Assembly: GCF_032444005.1 (NCBI RefSeq)
Contig: NC_091285.1
Span: 20,026,001-20,090,000 of the forward strand
DNA: 64,000 nucleotides
Source of the DNA: Ranitomeya imitator
Taxonomy: Eukaryota
Direction of reading: 5' to 3'
This document shows positions 4,171-23,800 of this stretch, in pieces; position 1 is the first letter of the stretch; each line of letters begins with the position of its first letter. Under the pieces are notes generated by a model. The model ran no database searches. It was not told the origin of the DNA and saw nothing but the letters and a program-made list of their open reading frames with translations. A program made the position numbers and the translations under genes.

Positions 4171-4769
4171 AGTTTATTTTTGATAGGATGCCATCAAGAT
4201 GCCCTAATTTTAGAGGTAGAAAGAGGTGTAGGGATATAAATATAGTGGCAGACCTGGTTTGTCATATACCCTTTATTATTTGGTGGTAACAGGACTCTTT
4301 TATATGGACGAACTAGGAGGAAAATTTGTCCACGTGAAATATACAATAAGACCTGGCATCACAGTAGGGAGGGGGTACTCATTTTTATTTATCTTTTTAC
4401 ATAGGTCACTGGAGGGGGGATCATATTACTGATGCTAGCCATTGAGTTAGTTTTCTGCTCCTTATGTCCCATTGTAACAAACCCTGTGCTGTCACTTAGG
4501 CCTTTGAGCCTAGAGGGTCCCAAAAGATATTTTTAGCCAATATGAGAAGGTCAATATTTTTAAAGCCATGTATATGTTTCCATTCACTGACAGCAAGCAC
4601 AATGTCATCTACTGTACTCACCCCGAAGCGGAAATTTTGGAGGTGTAACGTTCTTGCCTATGGGAAAGTACATCCCTCAGCCTTTGGGCACTATCACCCT
4701 CTGGGGCTCGGGTGCCACTGCCGCCCCTTTAAATACGCATCAGATAATACACAATGATCAGATCATCTA

Positions 4770-4785
4770 TTTATTTTTGTTTATT
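4770..4785 (-). terminator. Candidate polyadenylation signals (two AATAAA) of the secreted-protein gene
   Basis: TTTATT at 4770-4775 and 4780-4785 on +, i.e. AATAAA on -, about 90-140 nt past the predicted stop codons. Confidence 0.5.
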
Positions 4786-4912
4786 AAATACATTAATATT
4801 CATTATTATTATTTCAGGAATAAATATATTATTTATATTTCAGGACCACAGACTTCGGGCCACGGGGGGGCTTTAACTTTGCACAACTCCCAGAATCCTT
4901 TGTAGTAAATCC

Positions 4913-4968
4913 TTAAGGCGCGTGTACATCTGACGTCTCGTCCTTCTGTAAACTTTGGTAGAACCTGC
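4913..4968 (-). CDS. Secreted-protein gene, coding exon 3 (last)
   Basis: Acceptor TTTTTTTTCTTTTTTCCAATGGCAG; phase 1 gives (G)RFYQSLQKDETSDVHAP*; a second AG 4 nt downstream gives (G)STKVYRRTRRQMYTRLKDLLQRILGVVQS* ending at 4873. Confidence 0.6.
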
Positions 4969-7900
4969 CTGCCATTGGAAAAAAGAAAAAAAAGTTGGGG
5001 TGTGAAGAAAGGTGCACTGACAGCACACAGATGATTTCTGGCTGCCTACAGTCACCACTAGAGGGAGCACATTACATGCTGTTTTATTAATGCAAAGGCA
5101 GTTAGAGCTCCCTCTAGTGGTGGCAAAGAAAATTGTGCACTAACTTGATATCTATGCAGGGGATTTGGAGCTTTGTGTCAGAAAAGCTTTCTTGACCATG
5201 TGTTTACCTGTCCTTTTGGAGACACTCTTGAAATCACACCTGCCCTGTGGCATCTTGCATGTAAATAAGCCAAGGCAGCCATGACAGTCAGATGGTCTCT
5301 TACAGGGATGGGACATGACTTCTTCACAGGAATGCTAGAAAGATAGTTTTTAAAAAAAATTATAAGAAAGGGTGAAAATTCCATGATTTGGCCACTGGGG
5401 GGCGCTGCTTTTAAACTTGCATAACATGTAGGAGAATGCTGTTCTTAGTAATGTCATTTATATATATAAGAATAAAGAAGTCTAGCACTAAACTTAAGCG
5501 GTGATAGATTTGATCAAATCAAATCAAATTTATCAAATCTATCGCCGCTTAAGTTGAGTGCTAGACTTCTTTATATTTATATTGAAGGTCTGGGAACCTA
5601 GTCTGAGCACCACAGTATAGCTGTACACACGGTGTTTTCTCTCTCATATATATAAGAGGCATCATGATTACTCGCTAATCCCGCCCCCTGCACAGTAGCT
5701 CCGCCCCCCACCACATCACCACACATAATCCCACCCCCACCCCATTACCACACATAATCCCATCCCCCCACATTACCACACGAGGCTCTGTCCCCACACA
5801 TTACCACACGAGGCTCCGTCCCCACACATTACCACACGAGGCTCCGTCCCCACACATTACCACACGAGGCTCCGTCCCCACACATTACCACACGATGCTC
5901 CGTCCTCACACATTACCACACGAGGCTCCATCCCCCCACATTACCACACGATACTCCATCCTCACACATTACCACACGAGGCTCCTTCCCCACACATTAC
6001 CACACGATGCTCCGTCCTCACACATTACCACACGAGGCTCCGTCCCCACACATTACCACACGAGGCTCCGTCCCCACAAATTAGCACACGAGGCTCCGTC
6101 CCCACACATTACCACACGAGGCTCTGTCCCCCCACATTACCACACGAGGCTCCGTCCCCACACATTACCACACGAGGCTCTGTCCCCCCACATTACCACA
6201 CGAGGCTGCGTCCCCACACATTACCACATGAGGTTCCGTCCCCACACATTACCACACGAGGCTCCGTCCACATACATTACCACACTAGGCTCCGTCCCCA
6301 CACATTACCACATGAGGCTCCTCCCCCCACATTACAACACGAGGCTGCGTCCCCACACATTACCACACGAGGTTCGTCCCCACACATTACCACACGCAGC
6401 ACTTTCTATGTAATTCAACCACTTCAGCCAAGGTAAACGTACATTTAATTGCATAATCACCAGCAGCGTTAATTAGATATCAATGAGCGTGCCGAGCGTT
6501 AGCTGGCTGGAAACAGCTAGTCTATTATAAGTGATGTCATAGCAACATCTGTCAAGTGCCAAAATACCATTGAATAGGCCCGATGTGGTGGACCTGGAAT
6601 AGAAGAATAACCCTGAAGCCCCCGGTCTGAGTCGCTGATCCCTGGAATCTACGCATGTGCTTATATTGTACACTGGGGGCAAAGTAAATGTGGAAGGTGT
6701 TATAGCAAACAGTAAGGACTCTGCTGCACTAAACCCACCTCCACCTGTGCACAATGAAATGATATCACTCATGGAACCCAAAGTTCCCGACAAGAAATAA
6801 AAGAAAAAATCCCAACAAATGGATATACAGTAGTTCCTCAGTGAGACTGTTCTCATAAACAAGAACTCATAGAGTGACCCAGTCTGTGAGTCACTCCATA
6901 TACAGTGCCACAGCCAGGGAGTGACCCCATATACAGTGCCAGAGCCAGGGAGTGACCCCATATACAGTGCCAGAGCCAGGGAGTGACCCCATATACAGTG
7001 CCACAGCCAGGGAGTGACCCCATATACAGTGCCACAGCCAGGGAGTGACCCCATATACAGTGCCAGAGCCAGTGAGTGACCCCATATACAGTGCCACAGC
7101 AAGGGAGTGACCCTATATACAGTGCCACAGCCAGTGAATGACTCCATATACAGTGCCACAGCCAGTGAGTGACCCCATATACAGTGCCACAGCCAGGGAG
7201 TGACCCCATATACAGTGCCACAGCCAGGGAGTGACCCCATATACAGTGCCACAGCCAGTGAGTGACCCCATATACAGTGCCACAGCCAGGGAGTGACCCC
7301 ATATACAGTGCCACAGCCAGGGAGTGACCCCATATACAGTGCCACAGTCAGTGAGTGACCCCATATACAGTGCCACAGCCAGGGAGTGACCCCATATACA
7401 GTGCCACAGCCAGTGAGTGACCCCATATACAGTGCCACAGCCAGGGAGTGACCCCATATACATTGCCACAGCCAGGGAGTGACCCCATATACAGTGCCAC
7501 AGTCAGTGAGTGACCCCATATACAGTGCCACAGCCAGTGAGTGACTCCATATACAGTGCCACAGCCAGGGAGTGACCCCATATACAGTGCCACAGCCAGG
7601 GAGTGACCCTATATACAGTGCCACAGCCAGTGAATGACTCCATATACAGTGCCACAGCCAGTGAGTGACCCCATATACAGTGCCACAGCCAGTGAGTGAC
7701 CCCATATACAGTGCCACAGCCAGGGAGTGACCCCATATACAGTGCCACAGCCAGTGAGTGACCCCATATACAGTGCCACAGCCAGGGAGTGACCCCATAA
7801 ACAGTGCCACAGCCAGGGAGTGACCCCATATACAGTGCCACAGCCAGTGAGTGACTCCATATACAGTGCCACAGCCAGGGAGTGACCCCATATACAGTGC

Positions 7901-10900
7901 CACAGCCAGGAAGTGACCCTATATACAGTGCCACAGCCAGTGAGTGACCTCATATACAGTGCCACAGCCAGGGAGTGACCCCATATACAGTGCCACAGCC
8001 AGTGAGTGACCTCATATACAGTGCCACAGCCAGGGAGTGACCCCATATACAGTGCCACAGCTAGTGAGTGACTTCATATACAGTGCCACAGCCAGTGAGT
8101 GACCTCATATACAGTGCCACAGCTAGTGAGTGACCCCATATACAGTGCCACAGTCAGTGAGTGACCCCATATACAGTGCCACAGCCAGGGAGTGACCCCA
8201 TATACAGTGCCACAGTCAGTGAGTGACCCCATATACAGTGCCACAGCCAAGGAGTGACTCCATATACAGTGCCACAGCCAGGGAGTGACCTCATACAGTG
8301 CCACAGCCAGGGAGTGACCCCATATACAGTGCCACAGTCAGTGAGTGACCCCATATACAGTGCCACAGTCAGTGACTCCATATACAGTGCCATAGTCAGT
8401 GAGTGACCCCATATACATTGCCACAGCCAGGGAGTGACCCCATATACAGTGCCAGAGCCAGGGAGTGACCCCATATACAGTGCCACAGCCAGGGAGTGAC
8501 CCCATATACAGTGCCACAGCCAGGGAGTGACCCCATATACAGTGCCACAGCCAGGGAGTGACCCCATATACAGTGCCACAGCCAGGGAGTGACCCCATAT
8601 ACAGTGCCACAGCCAGTGAGTGACCCCATATACAGTGCCACAGCCAGGGAGTGACCCCATATACAGTGCCACAGCCAGGGAGTGACCCCATATACAGTGC
8701 CACAGCCAGGGAGTGACCCCATATACAGTGCCACAGCCAGGGAGTGACCCCATATACAGTGCCAGAGCCAGGGAGTGACCCCATATACAGTGCCACAGCT
8801 AGGGAGTGACCCCATATACAGTGCCAGAGCCAGGGAGTGACCCCATATACAGTGCCACAGCAAGGGAGTGACCCTATATACAGTGCCACAGCCAGTGAAT
8901 GACTCCATATACAGTGCCACAGTCAGTGAGTGACCCCATATACAGTGCCACAGCCAGTGAGTGACCCCATATACAGTGCCACAGCCAGGGAGTGACCCCA
9001 TATACAGTGCCACAGCCAGTGAGTGACCCCATATACAGTGCCACAGTCAGTGAGTGACCCCATATACAGTGCCACAGCCAGTGAGTGACTCCATATACAG
9101 TGCCACAGCCAGGGAGTGACCCCATATACAGTGCCACAGTCAGTGAGTGACCCTCATATACAGTGCCACAGCCAGTGAGTGACTCCATATACAGTGCCAC
9201 AGCCAGGGAGTGACCCCATATACAGTGCCACAGTCAGTGAGTGACCCCATATACAGTGCCACAGCCAGTGAGTGACTCCATATACAGTGCCACAGCCAGG
9301 GAGTGACCCCGTATACAGTGCCAGAGCCAGGGAGTGACCCCATATACAGTGCCACAGCCAGTGAGTGACTCCATATACAGTGCCACAGTCAGTGAGTGAC
9401 CCCCATATACAGTGCCACAGCCAGGGAGTGACCCCATATACAGTGCCACAGCCAGGGAGTGACCCCATATACAGTGCCACAGCCAGTGAGTGACCCCATA
9501 TACAGTGCCACAGCCAGGGAGTGACCCCATATACAGTGCCACAGCCAGGGAGTGACCCCATATACAGTGCCACAGCCAGTGAGTGACTCCATATACAGTG
9601 CCACAGCCAGGGAGTGACCCCATATACAGTGCCACAGCCAGGGAGTGACCCCATATACAGTGCCAGAGCCAGGGAGTGACCCCATATACAGTGCCACAGC
9701 CAGGGAGTGACCCCATATACAGTGCCAGAGCCAGTGAGTGACCCCATGTACAGTGCCACAGCCAGGGAGTGACCCCATATACAGTGCCAGAGCCAGTGAG
9801 TGACCCCATGTACAGTGCCACAGTCAGTGAGTGACCCCATATACAGTGCCACAGCCAGGGGGTGACCCCATATACAGTGCCACAGCCAGGGAGTGACCCC
9901 ATATACAGTGCCACAGCCAGGGAGTGACCCCATATACAGTGCCACAGTCAGTGAGTGACCCCATGTACAGTGCCACAGCCAGGGAGTGACCCCATATACA
10001 GTGCCACAGCCAGGGGGTGACCCCATATACAGTGCCACAGCCAGGGAGTGACCCCATATACAGTGCCACAGCCAGGGAGTGACCCCATATACAGTGCCAC
10101 AGTCAGTGAGTGACCCCATATACAGTGACCCAGCCACAGTACTCCTGCTAGAGTACTCTACTATACAGTGCCCCAATTAGAACCGTCCGAAAATATAGTG
10201 CCCCAGTCAGAGAGTGGCCCATATAGCGTGCAACTGTAAGTGCCCCCAGATAAAGTGCCATTTTCAGTGAGTGACCCATATACAGTGCCACAGCCACTGA
10301 GCATGGGAGTACTCTGGATAGGGCACTGTATACGAGTGCTGTCTGGCTGAGTATGGAGAGATGCTCCGGCTGTGGCGTTGTATATATTGGGTCATATTCA
10401 TCATTTACTCCTTTAACTCAATGCAGTGACCCCACCAGAGAATCCCCCAGAGCACAGTACCCCCACTAGAGTACTCCACTATACAGTGCCACAATTACAG
10501 TATACCAAATACATAGTGCTCTAGACTGTGAGTGCCCCATATACAGTGACCCCGACAGTGCTCTCATATACACTGACCCCGACAGTGCCCCATATACAGT
10601 GACTCCGACAGTACCCCCATGTCAAGTGACCCCGACAGTGCTCAATATACAGTGACCCCGGCAGTGCCCCATATAGTGACCCCGACAGTGCCCCATATAC
10701 AGTGACCCCGACAGTGCTCTCATATACAGTGACCCCGACAGTGCTCAATATACAGTGACCCCGGCAGTGCCCCATATAGTGACCCCGACAGTGCCCCATA
10801 TACAGTGACCCCGACAGTGCTCTCATATACAGTGACCCCGACAGTGCCCCATATACACTGACCCCGACAGTGCCCCATATACAGTGACCCCGACAGTGCT

Positions 10901-11788
10901 CTCATATACAGTGACCCCGACAGTGCCCCATATACACTGACCCCGACAGTGCTCCATATACAGTGACCCCGACAATGCCCCATATACACTGACCCCGACA
11001 GTGCCCCATATACAGTGACTCCGACAGTACCCCCATGTCAAGTGACCCCGACAGTGCTCCATATACAGTGACCCCGGCAGTGCCCCATATAGTGACCCTG
11101 ACAGTGCTCCCATATAGTGACCCCAACAGTGCTCCCATATACAGTGACTTAGTCAATAAGTGTCCCCACATACAGTGCCAGACAGTGAGTGCATCCATAC
11201 AGTCACCCTCTCTCCTTGTTTCCACACAATCTAGGATGTAGATTGTTCCTTTAGAAGATCAGTTGCACCTTAGGCGGCTGCCTATTCTGCCTATCCCTTG
11301 TCTTGGCCGTTAATCATGGCCATGATGTCCTTTCTGACAAGTTGGGACTGACATGTTGTCTAACTTCCAGTGAAAGTGGTTGACAATGGTGGATCTCCAG
11401 AATAACATAGAGGTCTGGAGTGGTCACCGATCACTGGGGAGGTCTTAAAACAATGAGTTTCCCAGTCAGATCTTACCGTGTCCTGGTTGAACTTTCCGTG
11501 TTCACTCAGGTGGTGGAAGAACACGAGACCGGGATCTCCAGACACATCATGGAAGGCTTGACGTTTCCTTCTACCATCGAAGACATTGAATGGAAATCTC
11601 TCATCTAGGGTCTTCTCAGGAGACCTCATCTTGAACGGAGCCAACGGCTTCACCAGTGTACTCATTTCACTGGGACCTTGTCTGGTCTTCTGAACTATCC
11701 GGGTCCTCGTTGTGGTTCCACCAGTGGTACCATAGACCACGGATCCAACCAACAAGATAGCAAGTAAAGTACGAGATAAGAAATTCAT
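4913..11788 (-). CDS. Uncharacterised secreted prepro-protein, 3 coding exons (11788-11477, 5334-5208, 4968-4913), 164 aa; 176 aa if the alternative acceptor is used (exon 3 = 4964-4873)
   Basis: Spliced: MNFLSRTLLAILLVGSVVYG-TTGG...DGRRKR-QAFHDVSGDPGLVFFHHLSEHGKFNQDT/HSCEEVMSHPCKRPSDCHGCLGLFTCKMPQGRCDFKSVSKRT/GRFYQSLQKDETSDVHAP*. GT-AG introns with compatible phases (0, then 1); hydrophobic signal peptide, furin site, 6 Cys, upstream TATA-like box, downstream AATAAA. Confidence 0.75.
5208..5334 (-). CDS. Secreted-protein gene, coding exon 2 (six-Cys domain)
   Basis: CTTTCTAG|CAT...ACAG|GTAAAC; 127 nt; HSCEEVMSHPCKRPSDCHGCLGLFTCKMPQGRCDFKSVSKRT. Confidence 0.75.
5472..5574. repeat. Near-perfect inverted repeat (43-bp arms, 17-nt loop)
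   Basis: 5472-5514 ATAAAGAAGTCTAGCACTAAACTTAAGCGGTGATAGATTTGAT matches the reverse complement of 5532-5574 at 41/43 positions. Confidence 0.9.
5640..6520 (+). mobile_element. Helitron-like non-autonomous element enclosing a 28-bp minisatellite
   Basis: 5' TCTC..ATATATATAAG start; 3' short GC hairpin (GCCGAGCGTTAGCTGGC) followed by CTAG|T at 6517-6521; the expected A before the 5' TC is absent. Confidence 0.45.
5745..6398. repeat. 28-bp minisatellite (CACACATTACCACACGAGGCTCCGTCCC), ~23 copies
   Basis: Directly visible periodicity. Confidence 0.95.
6888..10128. repeat. 31-bp minisatellite (CCCCATATACAGTGCCACAGCCAGGGAGTGA), ~100 copies
   Basis: Directly visible; source of the repetitive ORFs MALYMGSLPGCGTVYGVTPWLWHCIWGHSL. 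Confidence 0.97.
10530..11155. repeat. 26-bp minisatellite (TACAGTGACCCCGACAGTGCCCCATA), ~24 copies
   Basis: Directly visible; shares CCCCATATACAGTG with the 31-bp array. Confidence 0.93.
11477..11788 (-). CDS. Secreted-protein gene, coding exon 1 (signal peptide, propeptide, RRKR)
   Basis: ATG at 11788 (GCAATGA), 104 codons to donor ACG|GTAAGA at 11477; part of track ORF 11360..11857. Confidence 0.75.
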
Positions 11789-13224: not shown

Positions 13225-16200
13225 ATTGGGGTGTTTAGGACACAATCTTCTAGTGTCTGGTCTGGAGGATAGTCTTCCCGTTGGATGGTGAGATGCTCAT
13301 TGGGGCGTTTAGGACACTATCTTCTAGTGTCTGGTCTGGAGGACAGTCATCCCGTTGGATGGTGAGATGCTCATTGGGGTGTTTAGGACACAATTATCTA
13401 GTGTCTGGTCTGGAGGATAGTCTTCTCGTTGGATGGTGAGATGTTCATTGGGGTGTTTAGGACACAATCTTTTAGTGTCTGGTCTGGAAGATAGTCTTCC
13501 CGTTGGATGGTGAGACGCTCATTGGGGTGTTTAGGACACAATTATCTAGTGTCTGGTCTGGAGGATAGTCTTCCCGTTGGATGGTGAGACGCTCATTGGG
13601 GTGTTTAGGACACAATTATCTAGTGTCTGGTCTGGAGGACAGTCTTCTCGTTGGATAGTGAGACGCTCATTGGGGTGTTTAGGACACAATCTTTTAGTGT
13701 CTGGTCTGGAGGACAGTCTTCCCGTTGGATGGTGAGACGCTCATTGGGGTGTTTAGGACACAATTATGTAGTGTCTGGTCTGGAGGATAGTCTTCTCGTT
13801 GGATGGTGAGACGTTCATTGGGGTGTTTAGGACACAATCTTTTAGAGTCTGGTCTGGAGGATAGTCTTCCCGTTGGATGGTGAGACGCTCATTGGGGTGT
13901 TTAGGACACAATCTTTTAGTGTCTTGTCTGGAGGATAGTCTTCCCGTTGGATGGTGAGACGCTCATTGGGGTGTTTAGTACACAATTATCTAGTGTCTGG
14001 TCTGGAGGATAGTCTTCTCGTTGGATGGTGAGATGCTCATTGGGGTGTTTAGGACACAATCTTTTAGTGTCTGGTCTGGAGGATAGTCTTCCCGTTGGAT
14101 GGTGAGACGCTCATTGGGGTGTTTAGGACACAATTATCTAGTGTCTGGTCTGGAGGATAGTCTTCTCGTTGGATGGTGAGACGCTCATTGGGGTATTTAG
14201 GACACAATCTTCTAGTGTCTGGTCTGGAGGACAGTCTTCCCGTTGGAAGGTGAGACGCTCATTGGGGTGTTTAGGACACAATCTTTTAGTGTCTTGTCTG
14301 GAGGATAGTCTCCCCGTTGGATGGTGAGACGCTCATTGGGGTGTTTAGTACACAATTAGCTAGTGTCTGGTCTGGAGGATAGTCTTCCCGTTGGATGGTG
14401 AGATGCTCATTGGGGTGTTTAGGACACAATCTTCTAGTGTCTGGTCTGGAGGATAGTCTTCCCGTTGGATGGTGAGACACTCATTGGGGTGTTTAGGACA
14501 CAATCTTTTAGTGTCTAGTCTGGAGGACAGTCTTCCCGTTGGATGGTGAGACGCTCAATGGGGTGTTTAGGACACAATTATCTAGTGTCTGGTCTGGAGG
14601 ATAGTCTTCCCATTGGATGGTGAGACGCTCATTGGGGTGTTTAGGACACAATCTTCTAGTGTCTGGTCTGGAGGACAGTCTTCCCGTTGGATGGTGAGAC
14701 GCTCATTGGGGTGTTTAGGACACAATTATCTAGTGTCTGGTCTGGAGGATAGTTTTCTCGTTGGATAGTGAGATGCTCATTGGGGTGTTTAGTACACAAT
14801 CTTTTAGTGTCTTGTCTGGAGGATAGTCTTCCCGTTGGATGGTGAGACGCTCATTGGGGTGTTTAGGACACAATTATCTAGTGTCTGGTCTGGAGGATAG
14901 TCTTCTCGTTGGATGGTGAGATGCTCATTGGGGTGTTTAGGACACAATCTTTTAGTGTCTGGTCTGGAGGATAGTCTTCCCGTTGGATGGTGAGACGCTC
15001 ATTGGGGTGTTTAGGACACAATCTTTTAGTGTCTGGTCTGGAGGACAGTCGTGCCGTTGGATGGTGAGACACTCATTGGGGTGTTTAGGACACAATTATC
15101 TAGTGTCTGGTCTGGAGGATAGTCTTCTCGTTGGATGGTGAGACGCTCATTGGGGCGTTTAGGACACAATCTTCTAGTGTCTGATCTGGAGGCTAGTCTT
15201 CCCGTTGGATGGTGAGGCCCTCATTGGGGCATTTAGGACACAATCTTCAAGTGTCTGGTCTGGAGGACAGTCTTCCCGTTGGATTGTGAGATGCTCATTG
15301 GGGTGTTTAGGACACAATTATCTAGTGTCTGGTCTGGAGGATAGTCTTCTCGTTGGGTAGTGAGATGCTCATTGGGGTGTTTAGGACACAATCTTTTAGT
15401 GTCTGGTCTGGAGGATAGTCTTCTCGATGGATGGTGAGATGCTCATTGGGGTGTTTAGGACACAATCTTTTAGTGTCTGGTCTGAAGGATTGTCTTCTCG
15501 TTAGATGGTGAGATGCTCATTGGGGCATTTAGGACGCAATCTCCTAGTGTCTGGTCTGGAGGACAGTCTTCCCGTTTGATGGTCAGACGCTCAATGGGGT
15601 GTTTAGGACACAATTATCTAGTGTCTGGTCTGGAGGATAGTCTTCCCGTTGGATGGTGAGACGCTCAATGGGGTGTTTAGGACACAATTATCTAGTGTCT
15701 GGTCTGGAGGATAGTCTTCTCGTTGGGTAGTGAGATGCTCATTGGGGTGTTTAGGACACAATCTTTTAGTGTCTGGTCTGGAGGATAGTCTTCTCGTTGG
15801 ATGGTGAGATGCTCATTGGGGTGTTTAGGACACAATCTTTTAGTGTCTGGTCTGAAGGATTGTCTTCTCGTTAGATGGTGAGATGCTCATTGGGGCGTTT
15901 AGGACGCAATCTCCTAGTGTCTGGTTTGGAGGACAGTCTTCCCGTTTGATGGTCAGATGCTCAATGGGGTGTTTAGGACACAATTATCTAGTGTCTGGTC
16001 TGGAGGATAGTCTTCCCGTTGGATGGTGAGACGCTCATTGGGGTGTTTAGGACACAATCTTCTAGTGTCTGGTCTGGAGGATAGTCTTCCCGTTGGATGG
16101 TGAGACGCTCATTGGGGTGTTTAGGACACAATCTTTTAGTGTCTGGTCTGGAGGACAGTCGTCCCGTTGGATGGTGAGACACTCATTGGGGTGTTTAGGA

Positions 16201-17443
16201 CACAATTATCTAGTGTCTGGTCTGGAGGATAGTCTTCTCGTTGGATGGTGAGACGCTCATTGGGGCGTTTAGGACACAATCTTCTAGTGTCTGATCTGGA
16301 GGCTAGTCTTCCCGTTGGATGGTGAGGCCCTCATTGGGGCGTTTAGGACACAATCTTCTAGTGTCTGGTCTGGAGGACAGTCTTCCCGTTGGATGGTGAG
16401 ACGCTGATTGGGGTGTTTAGGACACAATCTTCAAGTGTCTGGTCTGGAGGACAGTCTTCCCGTTGGATTGTGAGATGCTCATTGGGGTGTTTAGGACACA
16501 ATCTTCTAGTGTCTGGTCTGGAGGACAGTCTTCCCATTGGATGGTGAGACGCTCATTGGGGTGTTTAGGACACAATTATCTAGTGTCTGGTCTGGAGGAC
16601 AGTCTTCTCGTTGGATAGTGAGATGCTCATTGGGGTGTTTGGGACACAATTATCTAGTGTCTGGCCTGGAGGACAGTCTTCCCGTTGTATGGTGAGACGC
16701 TCATTGGGGTGTTTAGGACACAATTATCTAGTGTCTGTTCTGGAGGATAGTCTTCTCGTTGGATGGTGAGATGCTCATTGGGGTGTTTAGGACACAATCT
16801 TTTAGTGTCTGGTCTGGAGGATAGTCTTCCCGTTGGATGGTGAGACGCTCAATGGGATGTTTAGGACACAATTATCTAGTGTCTGGTCTGGAGGATAGTC
16901 TTCTCGTTGGGTAGTGAGATGCTCATTGGGGTGTTTAGGACACAATCTTTTAGTGTCTGGTCTGGAGGATAGTCTTCTCGTTGGATGGTGAGATGCTCAT
17001 TGGGGTGTTTAGGACACAATCTTTTAGTGTCTGGTCTGAAGGATTGTCTTCTCGTTGGATGGTGAGATGCTCATTGGGGCGTTTAGGACGCAATCTCCTA
17101 GTGTCTGGTCTGGAGGACAGTCTTCCCGTTTGATGGTCAGACGCTCAATGGGGTGTTTAGGACACAATTATCTAGTGTCTGGTCTGGAGGATAGTCTTCC
17201 CGTTGGATGGTGAGACGCTCATTGGGGTGTTTAGGACACAATTATCTAGTGTCTGGTCTGGAGGACAGTCTTCTCGTTGGATAGTGAGACGCTCATTGGG
17301 GTGTTTAGGACACAATTATCTAGTGTCTGGTCTGGAGGACAGTCTTCCTGTTGGATGGTGAGACGCTCATTGGGGTGTTTAGGACACAATGTTCTAGTGT
17401 CTGGTCTGAAGGATTGTCTTCCCGTTGGATGGTGAGACGCTCC
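13225..17443. repeat. 74-bp tandem repeat, ~57 copies, overlapping the stop codon and 3' UTR of the PsuG-PsuK gene
   Basis: Unit ATTGGGGTGTTTAGGACACAATCTTCTAGTGTCTGGTCTGGAGGATAGTCTTCCCGTTGGATGGTGAGACGCTC. Confidence 0.97.
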
Positions 17444-17622
17444 ACACTCTGGGAGGTGGCCACTTCTCCGTTACTTGCTGCAAGCTGACGCTGATGGGTG
17501 AGATGAGCTGAGAGATGGGTCCGCGGGAACGGAGGGAGAGACGGGCGGCCAGGAGACCCATCCTAACACAGGTGTCAGTGTCATATTCGGCTAGGACCCC
17601 TGTAAGGAGACCTGCCATGAGG
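17394..17622 (-). CDS. PsuG-PsuK exon 18 (kinase C-terminus)
   Basis: (S)[32 protein letters not shown]...[16 protein letters not shown]. Confidence 0.9.
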
Positions 17623-20600
17623 CTGCGAGGAAGAAAGAGAACGGGTTACATGTTGCTTCCTACAATCTTACACTCTAAATTCTGAGTGAAAATTATCAAA
17701 AACCCTTTTTTTATGTGAAACTACACGAAAAATAATGTTTTTCCAAGAGGACATAGCTCAGTATTCCTGCTCTCATACTACAGGAAGGGCTTCTGCTGCA
17801 GTCAGTTGCTTTACAGCCAGTCAGAAGGCGGAAGAAAGAGGAGAAGAAAATGTCTGATCTTCCAGGGATACATATATTATATATGCACTCTTTATGAATC
17901 GATTCGATGGGAATTTAATTTACTTTGACTATTTAGGAATTCACCGAACATTACAATATGTGATTTGATTTGTATCAATTGCTAAAAATGGCCACCTCCA
18001 TTTTAAACATAGCAGAAAATTGCATCTGCCATAGAAGGATTACAAGCAGTCTCGGACTGGCCGACAGGAGAACAGGAAAATCCTCTGGTGGGCCCCCCAT
18101 GCAGAAATTGGATCTCCACTCCACCTATATAACAAGTAGTTGGCACAATAAATTTGTTTCACTATGTACAGACAAGGGCATAATCTCCACCTTCATTTAA
18201 CAAACTACCCTGTATATTATTATAGAGAAACATTGGCATATTTATGAATTAAAGTAATGTGATTTGCATGTAGCTGAACAGTGGGCAACCAGAGTCAATG
18301 TTACGGGTGGCACCCCAGTTCTTACACTGATCACAAGACCCTATAACGTCTTGCAGCCATCATATCACATAGTATAACACAGTCAATCAGGAGGGACTAT
18401 TAGAGCCAGTATAAAAGCAGAGGCAAGGAATGCAGCAGCCATGTTGCAGTGAATCTGGATAGTGAGAGAACGTCACAACGCACAGCTTCGCCATAGAGAT
18501 CAGGAGAAATAGCAATAAAATACTGGAGACTGTACAGCAAAGAAGAATATTGGTGTCTGAGTGAAAGAGAATAATGCAGATTTAGAGAGAAAAGAGGCCT
18601 CAGTGTCATACAAGTTTTTTCAGGGCAACTGAAGGCTTCGAAGCACTTTAGATTCACTACAAAATTTATCTGTAGTTTCACTCATCTCTATTCTTTATAT
18701 ATTTCATAAATGGATTCTGTGAAAAAGAAAAGAGTTTTCTATAAAACTGCCGGAATGTCTCAGTATAACAGACCTGTCTCCGGCTCCAGAAACATTGATG
18801 ATTTCCTCTGGAGGAATGGGAGCGGCTGGATAATGTACAGCGCACAGATCATCCCTTAATACCTAATGAAGCAGAGAGAGAGGCAATAATTCCCGAAAGG
18901 AATGAAAAGGCAAAACATTTCTACAAAAAAAATAAAATATAACCACATCCTCCCAATGTAATACAGATTTTGGGTCTCTTTTCTTCCCTCTGATTAGACA
19001 GGCTCTTCCTGTAATGCCAGAGATGTGTCCAGCTAATGACTTGTCTCTTGCTGCAGCTCTTCCTCCCCTCTCACAGCGCACAGTCTCAGAGAGAGAGAAA
19101 CTACAGCTGAATCCCTCTCACAACGCCTACAATTTACTGGTTCACACTAGATAGATATTTTTTGGGGAGTGGGGTAGGGAGTTTGATTTTTTATTTACGT
19201 TTCATATTCATCTCAGGCCGTGAAGACATACACATCACCTTCGTAAAAAATTACCTATTTATTTAAATCAGGTTTTTCTGGTACATGTATTTAAAAAACT
19301 GGCAATGTGTTTATTTATATATCATGATCTTTATTAAAAATTAGAAAGAGTAATTTCTTGCAATATTCACACTGATTACTAGAGCTTTTTTAGACTCTAA
19401 CTTTCTGTCCTTTCAAGAAGAGTTTTCATCACTTTTATCAGCAAAGGCAGAATTACAATACTAAGTAGCAACTCTGTACACACCTGATAACATAGGATCC
19501 ACCAATCATAACAGGTGATGTCACAGCTCACCTCCTCCTCCTGTACAATGACTGATAACACCTCTATATACAGTAGATAACACAGGATCCACCATTCACA
19601 ATAGGTGATGTCACAGCTCACCTCCTCCTCCTCCTCCTGTACAATGACTGATAACACCTCTATATACAGTAGATAACACATGATCCACCATTCACAATAG
19701 GTGATGTCACAGCTCAGCTCACCTCCTCCCCCTCCTGTACAATGACTGATAACACCTCTATATACAGTAGATAACACAGGCTTCACCATTCACAATAGGT
19801 GATGTCACAGCTCACCTCCTCCTCCTATACAATGACTGATAACACCTCTATATACATGAGATAACACAGGATCCACCATTCACAATAGGTGATGTCACAG
19901 CTCACTTCCTCCTCCTGTACAATGACTGATAACACCTCTATATACAGTAGATAACACAGGATCCACCATTCACAATAGGTGATGTCACAGCTCACCTCCT
20001 CCTGTACAATGACTGATAACACCTCTATATACAGTAGACAACACAGGATCCACCATTCACAATAGGTGATGTCACAGCTCACCTCCTCCTCTTGTACAAT
20101 GACTGATAACACCTCTATATACAGTAGATAACACAGGATCCACCATTCACAATAGGTGATGTCACAGATCACCTCCTCCTCCTCCTGTACAATGACTGAT
20201 AACACCTGTATATACAGTAGATAACACAGGATCCACCATTCACAATAGGTGATGACACAGCTCACCTCCTCCTGTACAATGTCTGATAACACCTCTATAC
20301 ACAGCTGATAACACAGGATCCACCATTCACAATAGGTGATATCACAGCTCACCTCCTCCTGTACAATGACTGATAACACCTCTATATACAGTAGATAACA
20401 CAGGATCCAACATTCACAATAGGTGATGTCACAGCTCACCTCCTCCTCCTGTACAATGACTGATAACACCTCTATATACAGTAGATAACACAGGATCCAC
20501 GATTCACAATAGGTGATGTCACAGCTCACCTCCTCCCCTTAACAGAGAGTGGCCTTTGCACATGCTCATTAGATGCTTCAATACAACAGATAGGGGAGGA

Positions 20601-20761
20601 GTCTGTTCATTGCGGCTAATGTACGTGTGCATTCCATTAAACAACAGGAAGTTAGTCGAAAAAAACCCAATGGCCAGTATGAGAACCGCAAGATTTCTAA
20701 TTGCCATTTTTAATACAAATTGTGATATGGGAAAAAATACACTGCAAAATAATATATATAA

Positions 20762-20817
<56 letters not shown>

Positions 20818-23800
20818 TTAACACCAAAAAAAACTATTTAAACAATCGGTAATTTTCTTTGGTTTCCAGTCTTTCAAAAGTTTTTCCATTACTATCAACC
20901 ATTAATTTCGAATTTTCTACTTCATTCCACCGTAAAATGGTGATTGGGATTGGGATTATTTATGGGAGATGCCAAATAAAGAAAAATCTAAATAATTAGG
21001 GGGAGGAATGAAGTATTATAGGCATGGGTCCCTTTAAATGATAATGGGACGACGTGTTCAGACCGACGGGTTGTAGTCGACAAAACTTGGAAAATATTTC
21101 ACTACATCTTGACCTAAGAATGTGGAATCTACCTCAAATCCATACAATCAATGCTTGTCAATTATGGATATTCTATACCTTGTCTTCAGCACGAAGGGAT
21201 ACGGTTCTGTCACGCCTGTGGCCACACAAGAGGACGCCGTGGGCCCCCAGAGTTACTATGACGCAATGTATGTTCTCCAGGAGAGGCAACGAGAGGCTGA
21301 TGGCCATATCTACTATATCTTCTAATTTACACGGAATATCTAGGGAAGGAGACACGAGTCATGGAAAGAAACATACCGCAACGTACGTGTCAGGTAAAGG
21401 ACCGCCACCCTCACCGGTGGTATTACTCTTGTTTTCATTGATGAAGCCGTGATGAGAGATGTTGAGAATTTAGCTTTACACCTGTCAATCATCTGAAAGG
21501 TCAACAGTCGATGTCTGGAAAATGTGTCTCATTATCCTTTAGAATCTGACGTGATCCATCTATTTTATGTCTCTGGATGTAAATCTTCTAGTGAAGTCTC
21601 ATAACATTGCATCTAGTTCCCCAATATGTGCGTACAATCTATGTAAAGTTAATTGAGTCAGTTAAAACCGCTTCTCTAGATGAGGACCTGTTGGCGATCA
21701 ACTGATCGCCACCAGTCCTGCTGCTGTAATCATCAGGAAAAGCTGCAGTGGCCACTGGTGGAGAACAGTGGTACTGCATGGTGACTATTCTAAGAAGTTT
21801 GAGCCTTACATAGCACCAAATGCATTTGCAGAGGTTCTCCACTTTGGATAACATTGGTGCGAGTTATGAATAGAGTTGAGCGAATATGTTCGGAATCGGT
21901 CGCTGAATCTGAATTTGCCATATTCGTGCCATAATGGTACCCTATTCGTGCCAAATTTATGTTTGACGATCGTTCCCGAATATATTCGCTCATTTCTATT
22001 CCCGTTGACTCCAATGACGTTCGTCTGCATTGCAAAAACAATATTTGCCCCCGATCAGAATTGGAACCGAATTTTGAAAAATTTGCGCAATTCTAGATAT
22101 GAATCCCCAACCCCCACCATCGGCACCATTAACCTCAATATTTCCATATAGCACAGACAGACAGGAATCATCCTTGGATCATAATTGCTAGCAGTGATAA
22201 TAGTCTCCCAGCACTTATATCCTGTTTAGGAGGTAGAGTAAATTCAGAAACAACTGGATGAAATATTAAAGGGGACCTGTCACTTCCCATAAATATGAAG
22301 TTATTTTAGCTGATGTAAATACTGCCATTCACCTGAATCTGACAATATTTTTCTTTTGTTCCTACGCTTCTCCGTTCTTAAGATATGGCCTCTTTTTCCC
22401 TGTATATAAATATAGGCTTGCTACCTAGGGGGTGTGGCCTCAGCTCTTCATGGGTGTGGTTATCTTGAGAACCAATCCCAATTGGCTAAACAAGAAAGGG
22501 CCATATCTCAGGAACAGAGAGGCGCAGAAACAAAAAAAAAAAACATCGCCAGAATCAGGAGAACGGCGGCATTTACACCAAGCAAAAAAAATTACATATT
22601 TAAAGGAAGTGATGTTTTCTTTTAAAAAAAATTCACAGGAGTGTAATTTAATTGTAATCTATTGGGGTAATATAACGTTTTCTGTCTAATTTTGTATTTG
22701 TTGTTGTTTGTCAGTCTTGGGTTGTTACTATCCTGTGCATAAAATGCTGTTTTGCCCATTTTGAAAGGGTTTTTTTTATTTCACAAAGGTATTGAGATAT
22801 CAATGGGACATCATAAATCATAATCCCTGATGGCTAACGCTAATCCTCCATAATCCTCAACAGCTAAAACAGTCTCAAATTTGAGATCTCGGATTCCCAA
22901 AAATTGGGAATAATTGAAAGTGAACTACGGTAATTAAGATTCATTATGTCACCCAACTACCTACCCACCATCTTGGCGTTGCTTACCGATGTCTTCTACA
23001 TATCCCAAGGTCCTATTGATGGCTAGGAGCTCTTTTATGTTTGGAGAGAGGTAGGTCAAAGCCGTCCAGCTGTTTGAGGTGAAGGGTTTAGATGCTTTGT
23101 CTATATCTGTGGGTTCGTAGCAAACTGCAAAACATTATACAATAACTTTTACATTTACAGGGGATGTCTGGTACGAAGAAGCAGTGCGAAACGCGCGTCG
23201 GGGCAGAGGGACGCCGGGGCATACATCCACGTGGCAGACCTTAAGGTAATATACCCATTCTAATATAAAACTCTATATCTGCTAGTGACAATCATGTATC
23301 ATATTAGAGGATGGGTTTAGCCCGCCTCCGCATGACATAGATTATATCGGCACATTCCTATGAGGGGATGTTTTACCATATATCATGATGCACATAGAAT
23401 ATAGGTAGCATGGATGTAATTATCATATGTATATGTTAAATTAGTCCACGATTTGGATGTAGCCTATGGCTTTTTTGTGTCCCTCCTTTTAGGTCCAATA
23501 CCTTTCTTCTTTGTAGTATTTATACATTGTTTTTAATGATTTTCAGTAAACTATTAGTTTTTATTAGTACCTCAGTCTATGTCACTTATTTTTCTTACAC
23601 TGGGTGATCAAGTCTTTTTGTGATATATTTAAAGGGGATGTCTGGTTTAGTATATCATTTTCAAATGCTCTTTTATCTGGAAGAGAAACTAGCTACAAAA
23701 ATGTATCTGTCTCACTGGAGGACCCTGTCCATTTATTACACAAAGAAGAGAATGATTTCAATAGAAGCTGTGCAATACCTCATTTCACCTGCGGGAATGC

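Follow-up and report, generated by a model that had tools for sequence, protein, structure and literature searches.

We analysed a 64,000-nucleotide stretch of the Ranitomeya imitator genome (NCBI RefSeq assembly GCF_032444005.1, contig NC_091285.1, positions 20,026,001 to 20,090,000), referred to here as the window, and found that a three-exon gene for a secreted protein at this locus is real and is the orthologue of an unnamed single-copy gene present across jawed vertebrates, from shark to bird. The locus likely holds an intact, selectively maintained gene for a 164-amino-acid secreted precursor with a knottin core, the product of which is most likely an extracellular ligand. The original prediction, made from the sequence alone, had proposed a hidden three-exon gene for a secreted six-cysteine protein, and this proposal is borne out by exon anatomy, by orthologues and by the splicing of intron 2. 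Gene structure, conservation, purifying selection and the splicing of intron 2 are shown here, whereas secretion, cleavage by a convertase, the connectivity of the disulfides and a function as ligand are inferred. What is new is an undescribed vertebrate family with a probable knottin fold, the members of which have so far been only automatic predictions. Coordinates are given throughout as positions in the window, and all features of the gene lie on the minus strand.

Gene structure and conservation across jawed vertebrates

With the acceptor at 4968, the spliced open reading frame (ORF) runs in frame through 164 codons on exons at 11788-11477, 5334-5208 and 4968 onward. Nothing interrupts the ORF, each of the four splice sites is canonical, and tblastn with the Leptodactylus fuscus orthologue finds one copy of the gene in the window. 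The coding part of exon 1 (11788-11477) comprises 104 codons, from the ATG at 11788 to a phase 0 donor (ACG/GTAAGA), and carries the signal peptide, propeptide and RRKR that had been claimed for it. Its translation opens MNFLSRTLLAILLVGSVVYG, with a basic n-region, a hydrophobic core and V-Y-G at -3 to -1; the predicted signal peptide covers residues 1-20 (11788-11729) and would be removed after Gly20. A Thr/Gly-rich, fast-evolving pro-region follows, in which RRKR (residues 73-76, 11572-11561) matches the R-X-K/R-R motif of furin-type sites. RRKR is followed by QAFHDVSGDPGLVFFHHLSEHGKFNQDT, and the conserved motif encoded in exon 1 is HHLSEHGKFNQDT. Intron 1 (11476-5335) is, as proposed, a minisatellite-filled intron of 6.1 kb; it measures 6142 nucleotides and holds three minisatellites and an element resembling a miniature inverted-repeat transposable element (MITE).

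Exon 2 (5334-5208) is preceded by a polypyrimidine tract and TAG, ends ACAG/GTAAAC and has the predicted length of 127 nucleotides. It encodes the six-cysteine module, HSCEEVMSHPCKRPSDCHGCLGLFTCKMPQGRCDFKSVSKRT, in which the cysteines are spaced C-x7-C-x5-C-x2-C-x5-C-x6-C, again as claimed. Intron 2 (5207-4969, 239 nucleotides, GT..AG) includes a dispersed inverted-repeat element. The coding part of exon 3 (4968-4913) finishes a Gly codon and adds RFYQSLQKDETSDVHAP before the TAA stop at 4915-4913, so that the C-terminus obtained with acceptor 4968 is GRFYQSLQKDETSDVHAP. RNA contigs cover the 3' untranslated region (3'UTR, 4912-4812) down to at least 4812, this stretch aligns to the L. fuscus 3'UTR, and AATAAA signals lie at 4785-4780 and 4775-4770. 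The gene had been placed at 4873-11788; its start at 11788 stands, whereas the coding sequence stops at 4913, and 4873 is the stop of an unused frame that begins at 4964. In R. imitator, a furin-type convertase probably cuts after RRKR76. This would release a chain composed of the N-terminal motif HL..HGKFN.DT, a knottin core of ~31 residues with three predicted disulfides, and a short C-terminal helix, G.FYQSLQ. The predicted mature chain counted after RRKR has 88 amino acids, in place of the ~70 first estimated.

An exhaustive phmmer search with the 42-residue exon 2 peptide against 1.84 billion representative proteins returned 18 matches at E ≤ 1e-3, well beyond what chance would give. The best of these (E 9.4e-17, 76% identity) is a 159-amino-acid L. 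fuscus protein (KAM3926647.1, our P0001) that has the same architecture, with the cysteine module at residues 104-145. A profile built from eleven members matched 17 proteins with E values of 1e-37 to 1e-61, and the family covers frogs (Leptodactylus, Lithobates, Xenopus and Pelobates), a salamander, six lizards, two turtles, seven birds, a shark and a teleost. Orthologues include those of Lithobates pipiens (XP_077325401.1), Xenopus laevis (OCT86080.1, A0A1L8GQH5, gene XELAEV_18019774mg), the bird Vidua chalybeata (LOC128788449), Chiloscyllium punctatum (A0A401RM89) and the teleost Etheostoma spectabile (KAA8580413.1). All family entries are labelled 'uncharacterized', 'hypothetical' or 'unnamed' except the teleost one, which UniRef calls 'Myelin basic protein', a name that finds no support in its sequence. 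No mammal was among the family matches in two protein searches, and the absence from mammals is apparent, in the sense of not found rather than of proven loss.

Orthologues conserving the six cysteines had been set beforehand as a test of the gene, and all six are kept from frogs to shark. In the family alignments the invariant residues are the six cysteines together with the G, F and N of H-G-x-F-N-x-D-T, which stands directly before the module. In the window exon 1 ends with the codons for HGKFNQDT, and in L. fuscus the motif likewise occupies the final codons of that exon; the invariance of its G, F and N links the first exon to the second. Around Cys III and IV, the pattern S-D-C-x-G-C-L-G-L, represented in the window by PSDCHGCLGLFTC, occupies columns that are invariant or nearly so in 19-20 members. 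The C-terminal tail G.F.QS.Q is family-wide, and GIFYQSLQQDE in L. fuscus fits the 4968 frame. Birds, neobatrachian frogs (including the window protein) and fishes group apart in the family tree, as expected for orthologues.

The arrangement of exons and neighbouring genes is conserved as well. The L. fuscus exons measure 309, 127 and 44 nucleotides, with the same phases, the identical donor GACACG/GTAAGA and a single exon 3 acceptor that gives GIFYQSLQ. A phase-0 intron after ..DT, a 127-nucleotide middle exon and a phase-1 intron were established from the splice sites of the window and of L. fuscus, and tblastn blocks place the introns of X. laevis, Vidua and Etheostoma at the same positions; exon 2 in Xenopus and the teleost consists of 126 coding nucleotides and one split-codon base, which is the 127-nucleotide size. 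In both L. fuscus and Vidua the gene order is an Indigoidine_A/PfkB gene, the knottin-like gene and a convergent DENN-domain gene, and Xenopus retains the DENN neighbour. The window and the L. fuscus locus sequence used for comparison (L001) are collinear; in the window, upstream-gene exons lie at 17.4-21.6 kb, and the coding part of the DENN gene falls past the edge. The R. imitator gene is like its orthologues in precursor plan, G.FN.DT motif, cysteine spacing, tail, exon phases and frog and bird neighbours. It differs from them in a pro-region that cannot be aligned beyond close relatives and in an intron 1 that has grown to 6.1 kb via minisatellites, whereas the orthologous L. fuscus intron is 1.5 kb long and has related repeat units.

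Selection has acted unevenly along the precursor. Measured against L. fuscus, the precursor as a whole has a ratio of nonsynonymous to synonymous substitution rates (dN/dS) of 0.36. The ratio is 0.75 in residues 1-76 and drops to 0.16 in the mature part and 0.11 in the core, dS being 0.65-1.0; the mature part is under strong purifying selection and the pro-region evolves fast. Upstream of exon 1, blastn (window 12183-11464 against L001:9626-10322) and pairwise alignment with L. fuscus delimit a conserved proximal promoter at 12183-11861, the 330 bp upstream of the TATA-like box being 82% identical between the two frogs. This stretch is better conserved than the coding sequence of the pro-region. 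The TATA-like box (TATTTAA, 11867-11861) and the site resembling a cAMP response element (CRE-like, TGATGTCA, 11942-11935) that had been noted upstream are both present and are both kept in L. fuscus within invariant blocks, other such blocks being TTATTTAAGGGTT and GGAAAGTTGATGTCAC. Together, selection and promoter conservation argue against gene decay and for a working promoter at exon 1.

Predicted fold and proposed function

The cysteine spacing had been thought to lie outside characterised families, and no named family emerged from Pfam, PDB sequences or the literature. More specifically, nothing in Pfam rose above threshold for the window exons, ten homologues or 19 core segments. The window protein matched none of the curated knottin families (Toxin_9, Toxin_12, squash, D_CNTX and others), and D_CNTX reached E 0.06-0.31 in two homologues. 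When PDB sequences were compared with the family profile, a factor X EGF chain (E 1.9) was the sole match, and no relevant paper was found for the motif CLGLYTC, for twelve gene and protein identifiers or for vertebrate knottins.

The AlphaFold model of the window exon 2 peptide, made with 18 homologues, has a predicted local distance difference test score (pLDDT) of 76.5 with five concordant models, and places Cys V and VI in a C-terminal beta-hairpin. In a wide VIA-align search of 48,161 PDB representatives, 15 of the 17 matches at Z ≥ 2 are knottin or cystine-knot-type miniproteins (Z 2.0-3.4, rmsd 1.6-2.3 Å), the other two being the cysteine-rich domains of draxin and Dickkopf. Examples are the carboxypeptidase inhibitor 6jic (Z 3.4, 36 of 36 residues) and the EETI-derived CKP 8se8 (Z 3.2); toxins of spiders, cone snails, scorpions and sea anemones are also found, and EETI-II superposes with a root mean square deviation (rmsd) of 1.6 Å over 29 residues. 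The Foldseek top 50 are nearly all knottins as well, with template modelling (TM) scores of 0.5-0.76 and rmsd values of 1.1-2 Å. The nearest ESM Atlas clusters are spider knottin precursors (0.77-0.85), which we treat as leads only. Because both fold lists are uniform and agree with the ESM Atlas neighbours, the module is assigned a probable inhibitor-cystine-knot (ICK, knottin) fold on the strength of these models. A disulfide pairing of I-IV, II-V and III-VI is suggested by superposition on knottins with aligned cysteines. A model of the 83-residue mature chain of L. fuscus had a pLDDT of 62; it gave no useful Foldseek match in the PDB or the Atlas, and in the AFDB clusters it matched only its own family (shark and Xenopus entries).

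Several known systems offer points of comparison. The predicted core superposes on knottins such as squash EETI-II and MCoTI-II, potato-type carboxypeptidase inhibitors and channel toxins, with rmsd values of 1.1-2.3 Å over 29-36 residues and aligned cysteines; unlike them, the frog protein is without knottin Pfam membership and has its own loop spacing of 7-5-2-5-6. In contrast to the multigene knottins of plants and venoms, its core sits in an 88-amino-acid chain with conserved flanks and is encoded by a single-copy vertebrate gene. ASIP and AgRP are secreted vertebrate ligands with an ICK core, in which the C-terminal cystine knot is the receptor-binding part, and their genes have few coding exons. 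The frog protein is similarly a secreted vertebrate protein with few coding exons and a predicted C-terminal cystine-knot module, although it has six cysteines where ASIP and AgRP have ten, with another spacing and a CC pair. Agouti gave no match in Pfam or among PDB sequences, neither ASIP nor AgRP is among the sequence matches or the listed fold matches, and there is no evidence for homology to them. CART (CARTPT) is a small precursor from a three-exon gene that is cut by convertases at basic sites to give a six-cysteine C-terminal peptide and is found vertebrate-wide. The frog gene shares with it a small three-exon precursor with a six-cysteine C-terminal part, but the CART cysteine spacing differs in the first half, and the family profile left the CART chain unmatched in the PDB even at E ≤ 10. 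At the level of sequence, every test of membership in the AgRP/ASIP, CART and spider-toxin families failed.

We hypothesize that the product engages an extracellular receptor or channel via its rigid knottin core, in the style of a hormone or neuropeptide such as AgRP/ASIP or CART. Architecture and conservation make a ligand the most likely function. That the gene is present in a single copy, is syntenic and is under strong purifying selection speaks for an endogenous regulatory ligand rather than for a toxin or an antimicrobial peptide. In its most specific form this proposal is tentative: the family may be an undescribed prohormone-like one as old as jawed vertebrates, with an endogenous knottin ligand for a receptor or channel as its product, and may have persisted in lineages from sharks to birds with an apparent loss in mammals.

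It is conceivable, if unlikely, that the knottin core instead blocks an extracellular serine protease or carboxypeptidase, as the squash trypsin inhibitors and the potato carboxypeptidase inhibitor do. The best superpositions are with EETI-II, with engineered CKP binders of HTRA1 and with the carboxypeptidase inhibitors 6jic, 7eqz and 4cpa, and CKRPSDC.GC in the frog protein resembles CKQDSDC..GC of EETI-II. However, channel toxins of spiders, cone snails and sea anemones fit equally well, which means that the fold picks out no function, and no inhibitor family was matched at the sequence level. Conservation, moreover, is highest in inter-cysteine loops 2 to 4 and in the flanking motifs rather than in one exposed reactive loop. 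On the predicted fold alone, the inhibitor and ligand roles would not be separable.

The original prediction had also offered a toxin-like or defence peptide, and as a product of frog skin or glands this now appears to be the less likely option and a rather improbable one. The precursor plan of signal peptide, pro-region, dibasic site and disulfide-rich peptide does match that of toxin and host-defence precursors, and the nearest ESM Atlas clusters are spider toxin precursors and LEAP2, all below 0.9. Defence and toxin genes, however, are typically multi-copy with a fast-evolving mature peptide. The window holds one copy only, which is syntenic in frogs and a bird and occurs also in lizards, turtles, a shark and a teleost, and the mature part has a dN/dS of 0.11-0.16, with purifying selection from shark to bird.

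Transcripts, splicing and the coding status of the locus

Several observations weigh against a conserved secreted precursor with a knottin core. Exon 1 alone matched no protein in a word index of 5.8 billion proteins, a null that may be taken as a sensitivity limit of that search since tblastn matched the L. fuscus protein to exon 1 at E 7e-22. In the family alignments no canonical furin-type site is seen for Xenopus, the lizards, the turtle or the shark. The aligned position reads RRRR in L. fuscus, where the QAFHD that follows is conserved, and RRERR in Lithobates. Judged from these alignments, the site would be confined to the three neobatrachian frogs compared (R. imitator, Leptodactylus and Lithobates) and the RRPR of the salamander; furin processing, as first proposed, thus retains its site in this frog and loses its standing as a family-wide feature. 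The fold matches are all weak (Foldseek E ≥ 0.65, Z ≤ 3.4), as may be expected for a domain of ~30 residues, yet such statistics are not proof. The RNA sources, finally, are runs guessed to be RNA, of which contigs from four (X6, X4, X15 and X1) were placed on 4600-5600. The 11477->5334 joint was not seen in these contigs. Three exon 2 contigs (X6, X4 and X15) read through the acceptor at 5334 into intron 1, the X1 contig is a fully unspliced piece (5159-5379), and the read-through form closes the cysteine frame by a TAG at 5337-5335.

Of the two RNA joints predicted, the one across intron 2 was found. Splicing from 5208 to 4968 (GT..AG, 239 nucleotides skipped) is present in the X6 and X15 contigs, which come from two studies, and an X4 contig has a diverged exon 3 that reads GIFYQSLQRD in the same frame from the junction. 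The joint across intron 1, at which exon 1 ending at 11477 would continue CATTCCTGTGAAG, is supported by comparative evidence and not by reads. A tandem acceptor, CAG/GCAG, had been suggested at exon 3 and is present at 4968/4964. Its first site, 4968, is the one in use, and its second AG (4964-4961), with which the exon would start at 4964, was used by no contig. We therefore rejected a C-terminus made via 4964, with a second furin site and an amphipathic peptide: no contig supports it, exon 3 of L. fuscus offers just one acceptor, and the tail G.F.QS.Q of the family fits 4968. The alternative 'amphipathic peptide' frame is 3'UTR.

Words of exon 1 occur in small transcriptome-like runs (X33 0.63, X21 0.60, X6 0.37 and X4 0.24); X15, which has exons 2-3 at a depth of 51, is not among the holders of exon 1. 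The exon 2 contigs of X6, X4 and X15 reach 5461 and then resume with sequence that matches from ~6525 onward. This skip was considered as a splice and rejected, as it has no GT..AG, is flanked by CTTATA repeats and spans the MITE and the 28-bp minisatellite. The 1.06-kb segment (5462-6525) that is missing from the contigs of the three runs is probably an insertion/deletion polymorphism between individuals inside intron 1.

A related observation comes from birds. The bird proteins P0005, P0011 and P0012, derived from Logan, JGI and ENA contigs, open with a translated polypyrimidine tract (..LLPLPPQ) right before HSC, and P0012 runs on into exon 3; the bird contigs thus pass from intron 1 into exon 2 and have intron 2 spliced, as in the frog. 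It is possible that intron 1 is slowly spliced, or that there is an internal start.

Another reading is that the locus yields no secreted protein in R. imitator, its transcripts beginning in or retaining intron 1 and being non-coding, with no exon 1-exon 2 mRNA made. This would account for the crossing of 5334 by every exon 2 contig, for the stop codons that close the read-through frame and for the position of X15 outside the holders of exon 1. We nevertheless regard it as very improbable. The ORF is intact with four canonical splice sites, the mature part has a dN/dS of 0.16, the promoter is 82% identical to that of a frog of another genus, and the motif that closes exon 1 does not vary between shark and bird. 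The same read-through in the bird proteins P0005 and P0012 suggests slow splicing of the first intron rather than decay, and the contig evidence covers four runs and one stretch only. A module of cysteines and histidines that binds zinc inside the cell, instead of forming a disulfide knot, is scarcely credible: sub-threshold hits to Pfam zf-CCCH_PARP12 occur in 11 of 19 members (best E 2.8e-4, 19 bits against a cutoff of 27), but all fall below the gathering score and none concerns the window protein, most full-length members open with a signal-peptide-like hydrophobic N-terminus, and the six cysteines are conserved while the histidines are not.

Intron repeats, neighbouring genes and biological meaning

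Tandem Repeats Finder resolves the three minisatellites of intron 1 as 23 copies of a 28-bp unit (5763-6396), 105 copies of a 31-bp unit (6888-10136) and 24 copies of a 26-bp unit (10531-11148), and the MITE-like element is a palindromic inverted repeat of 119 nucleotides (5464-5582). The 31-bp units have relatives in the orthologous L. fuscus intron (L001:11218-11400), which places the origin of this repeat before the split of the two frogs, with expansion here to ~105 copies. In intron 2, within 5036-5185, the segments 5045-5082 and 5149-5185 are matched by numerous unrelated contigs, which reach 2.3 kb in length. These two segments form an inverted repeat around CCACTAGAGGGAGC, and the repeat belongs to a dispersed, transcribed family, probably a MITE.

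Beyond the promoter, a 4.2-kb satellite at 13225-17442 contains 57 copies of a 74-bp unit that match one another at 91%. With ~80% identity the unit resembles L001:7579-7645, where the L. fuscus Indigoidine_A/PfkB gene has its 3' end, and the array apparently grew from the terminal sequence of that gene. Minus-strand blocks at 17381-21586 are 82-85% identical to exons of the same L. fuscus gene, which encodes a fusion of the pseudouridine glycosidase/kinase type, and long repeat-derived ORFs at 19397-20529 (minus strand) mark a minisatellite in its intron region. On the other side, a 734-nucleotide block at 1198-1904 (also 1-56) is 74% identical to L001:13931-14593. No gene was called there; the block sits at the place expected for the 3'UTR of the convergent DENN-domain gene.

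As an annotation lesson, the locus demonstrates how a short conserved gene can escape notice when minisatellites fill a 6-kb intron. Conserved secreted orphan proteins are raw material for new hormones and receptor ligands, and this family combines ~450 million years of conservation with strict synteny and a promoter conserved between frog genera. Its knottin-type core can be synthesised, and orthologues are available in tractable models, namely Xenopus, birds and at least one teleost. If the proposed ligand role is true, the family would provide one of very few vertebrate ICK ligands besides agouti/AgRP. The absence from mammals, if real, would explain why the family has been neglected, and would raise the physiological question of which axis non-mammalian vertebrates run with it.

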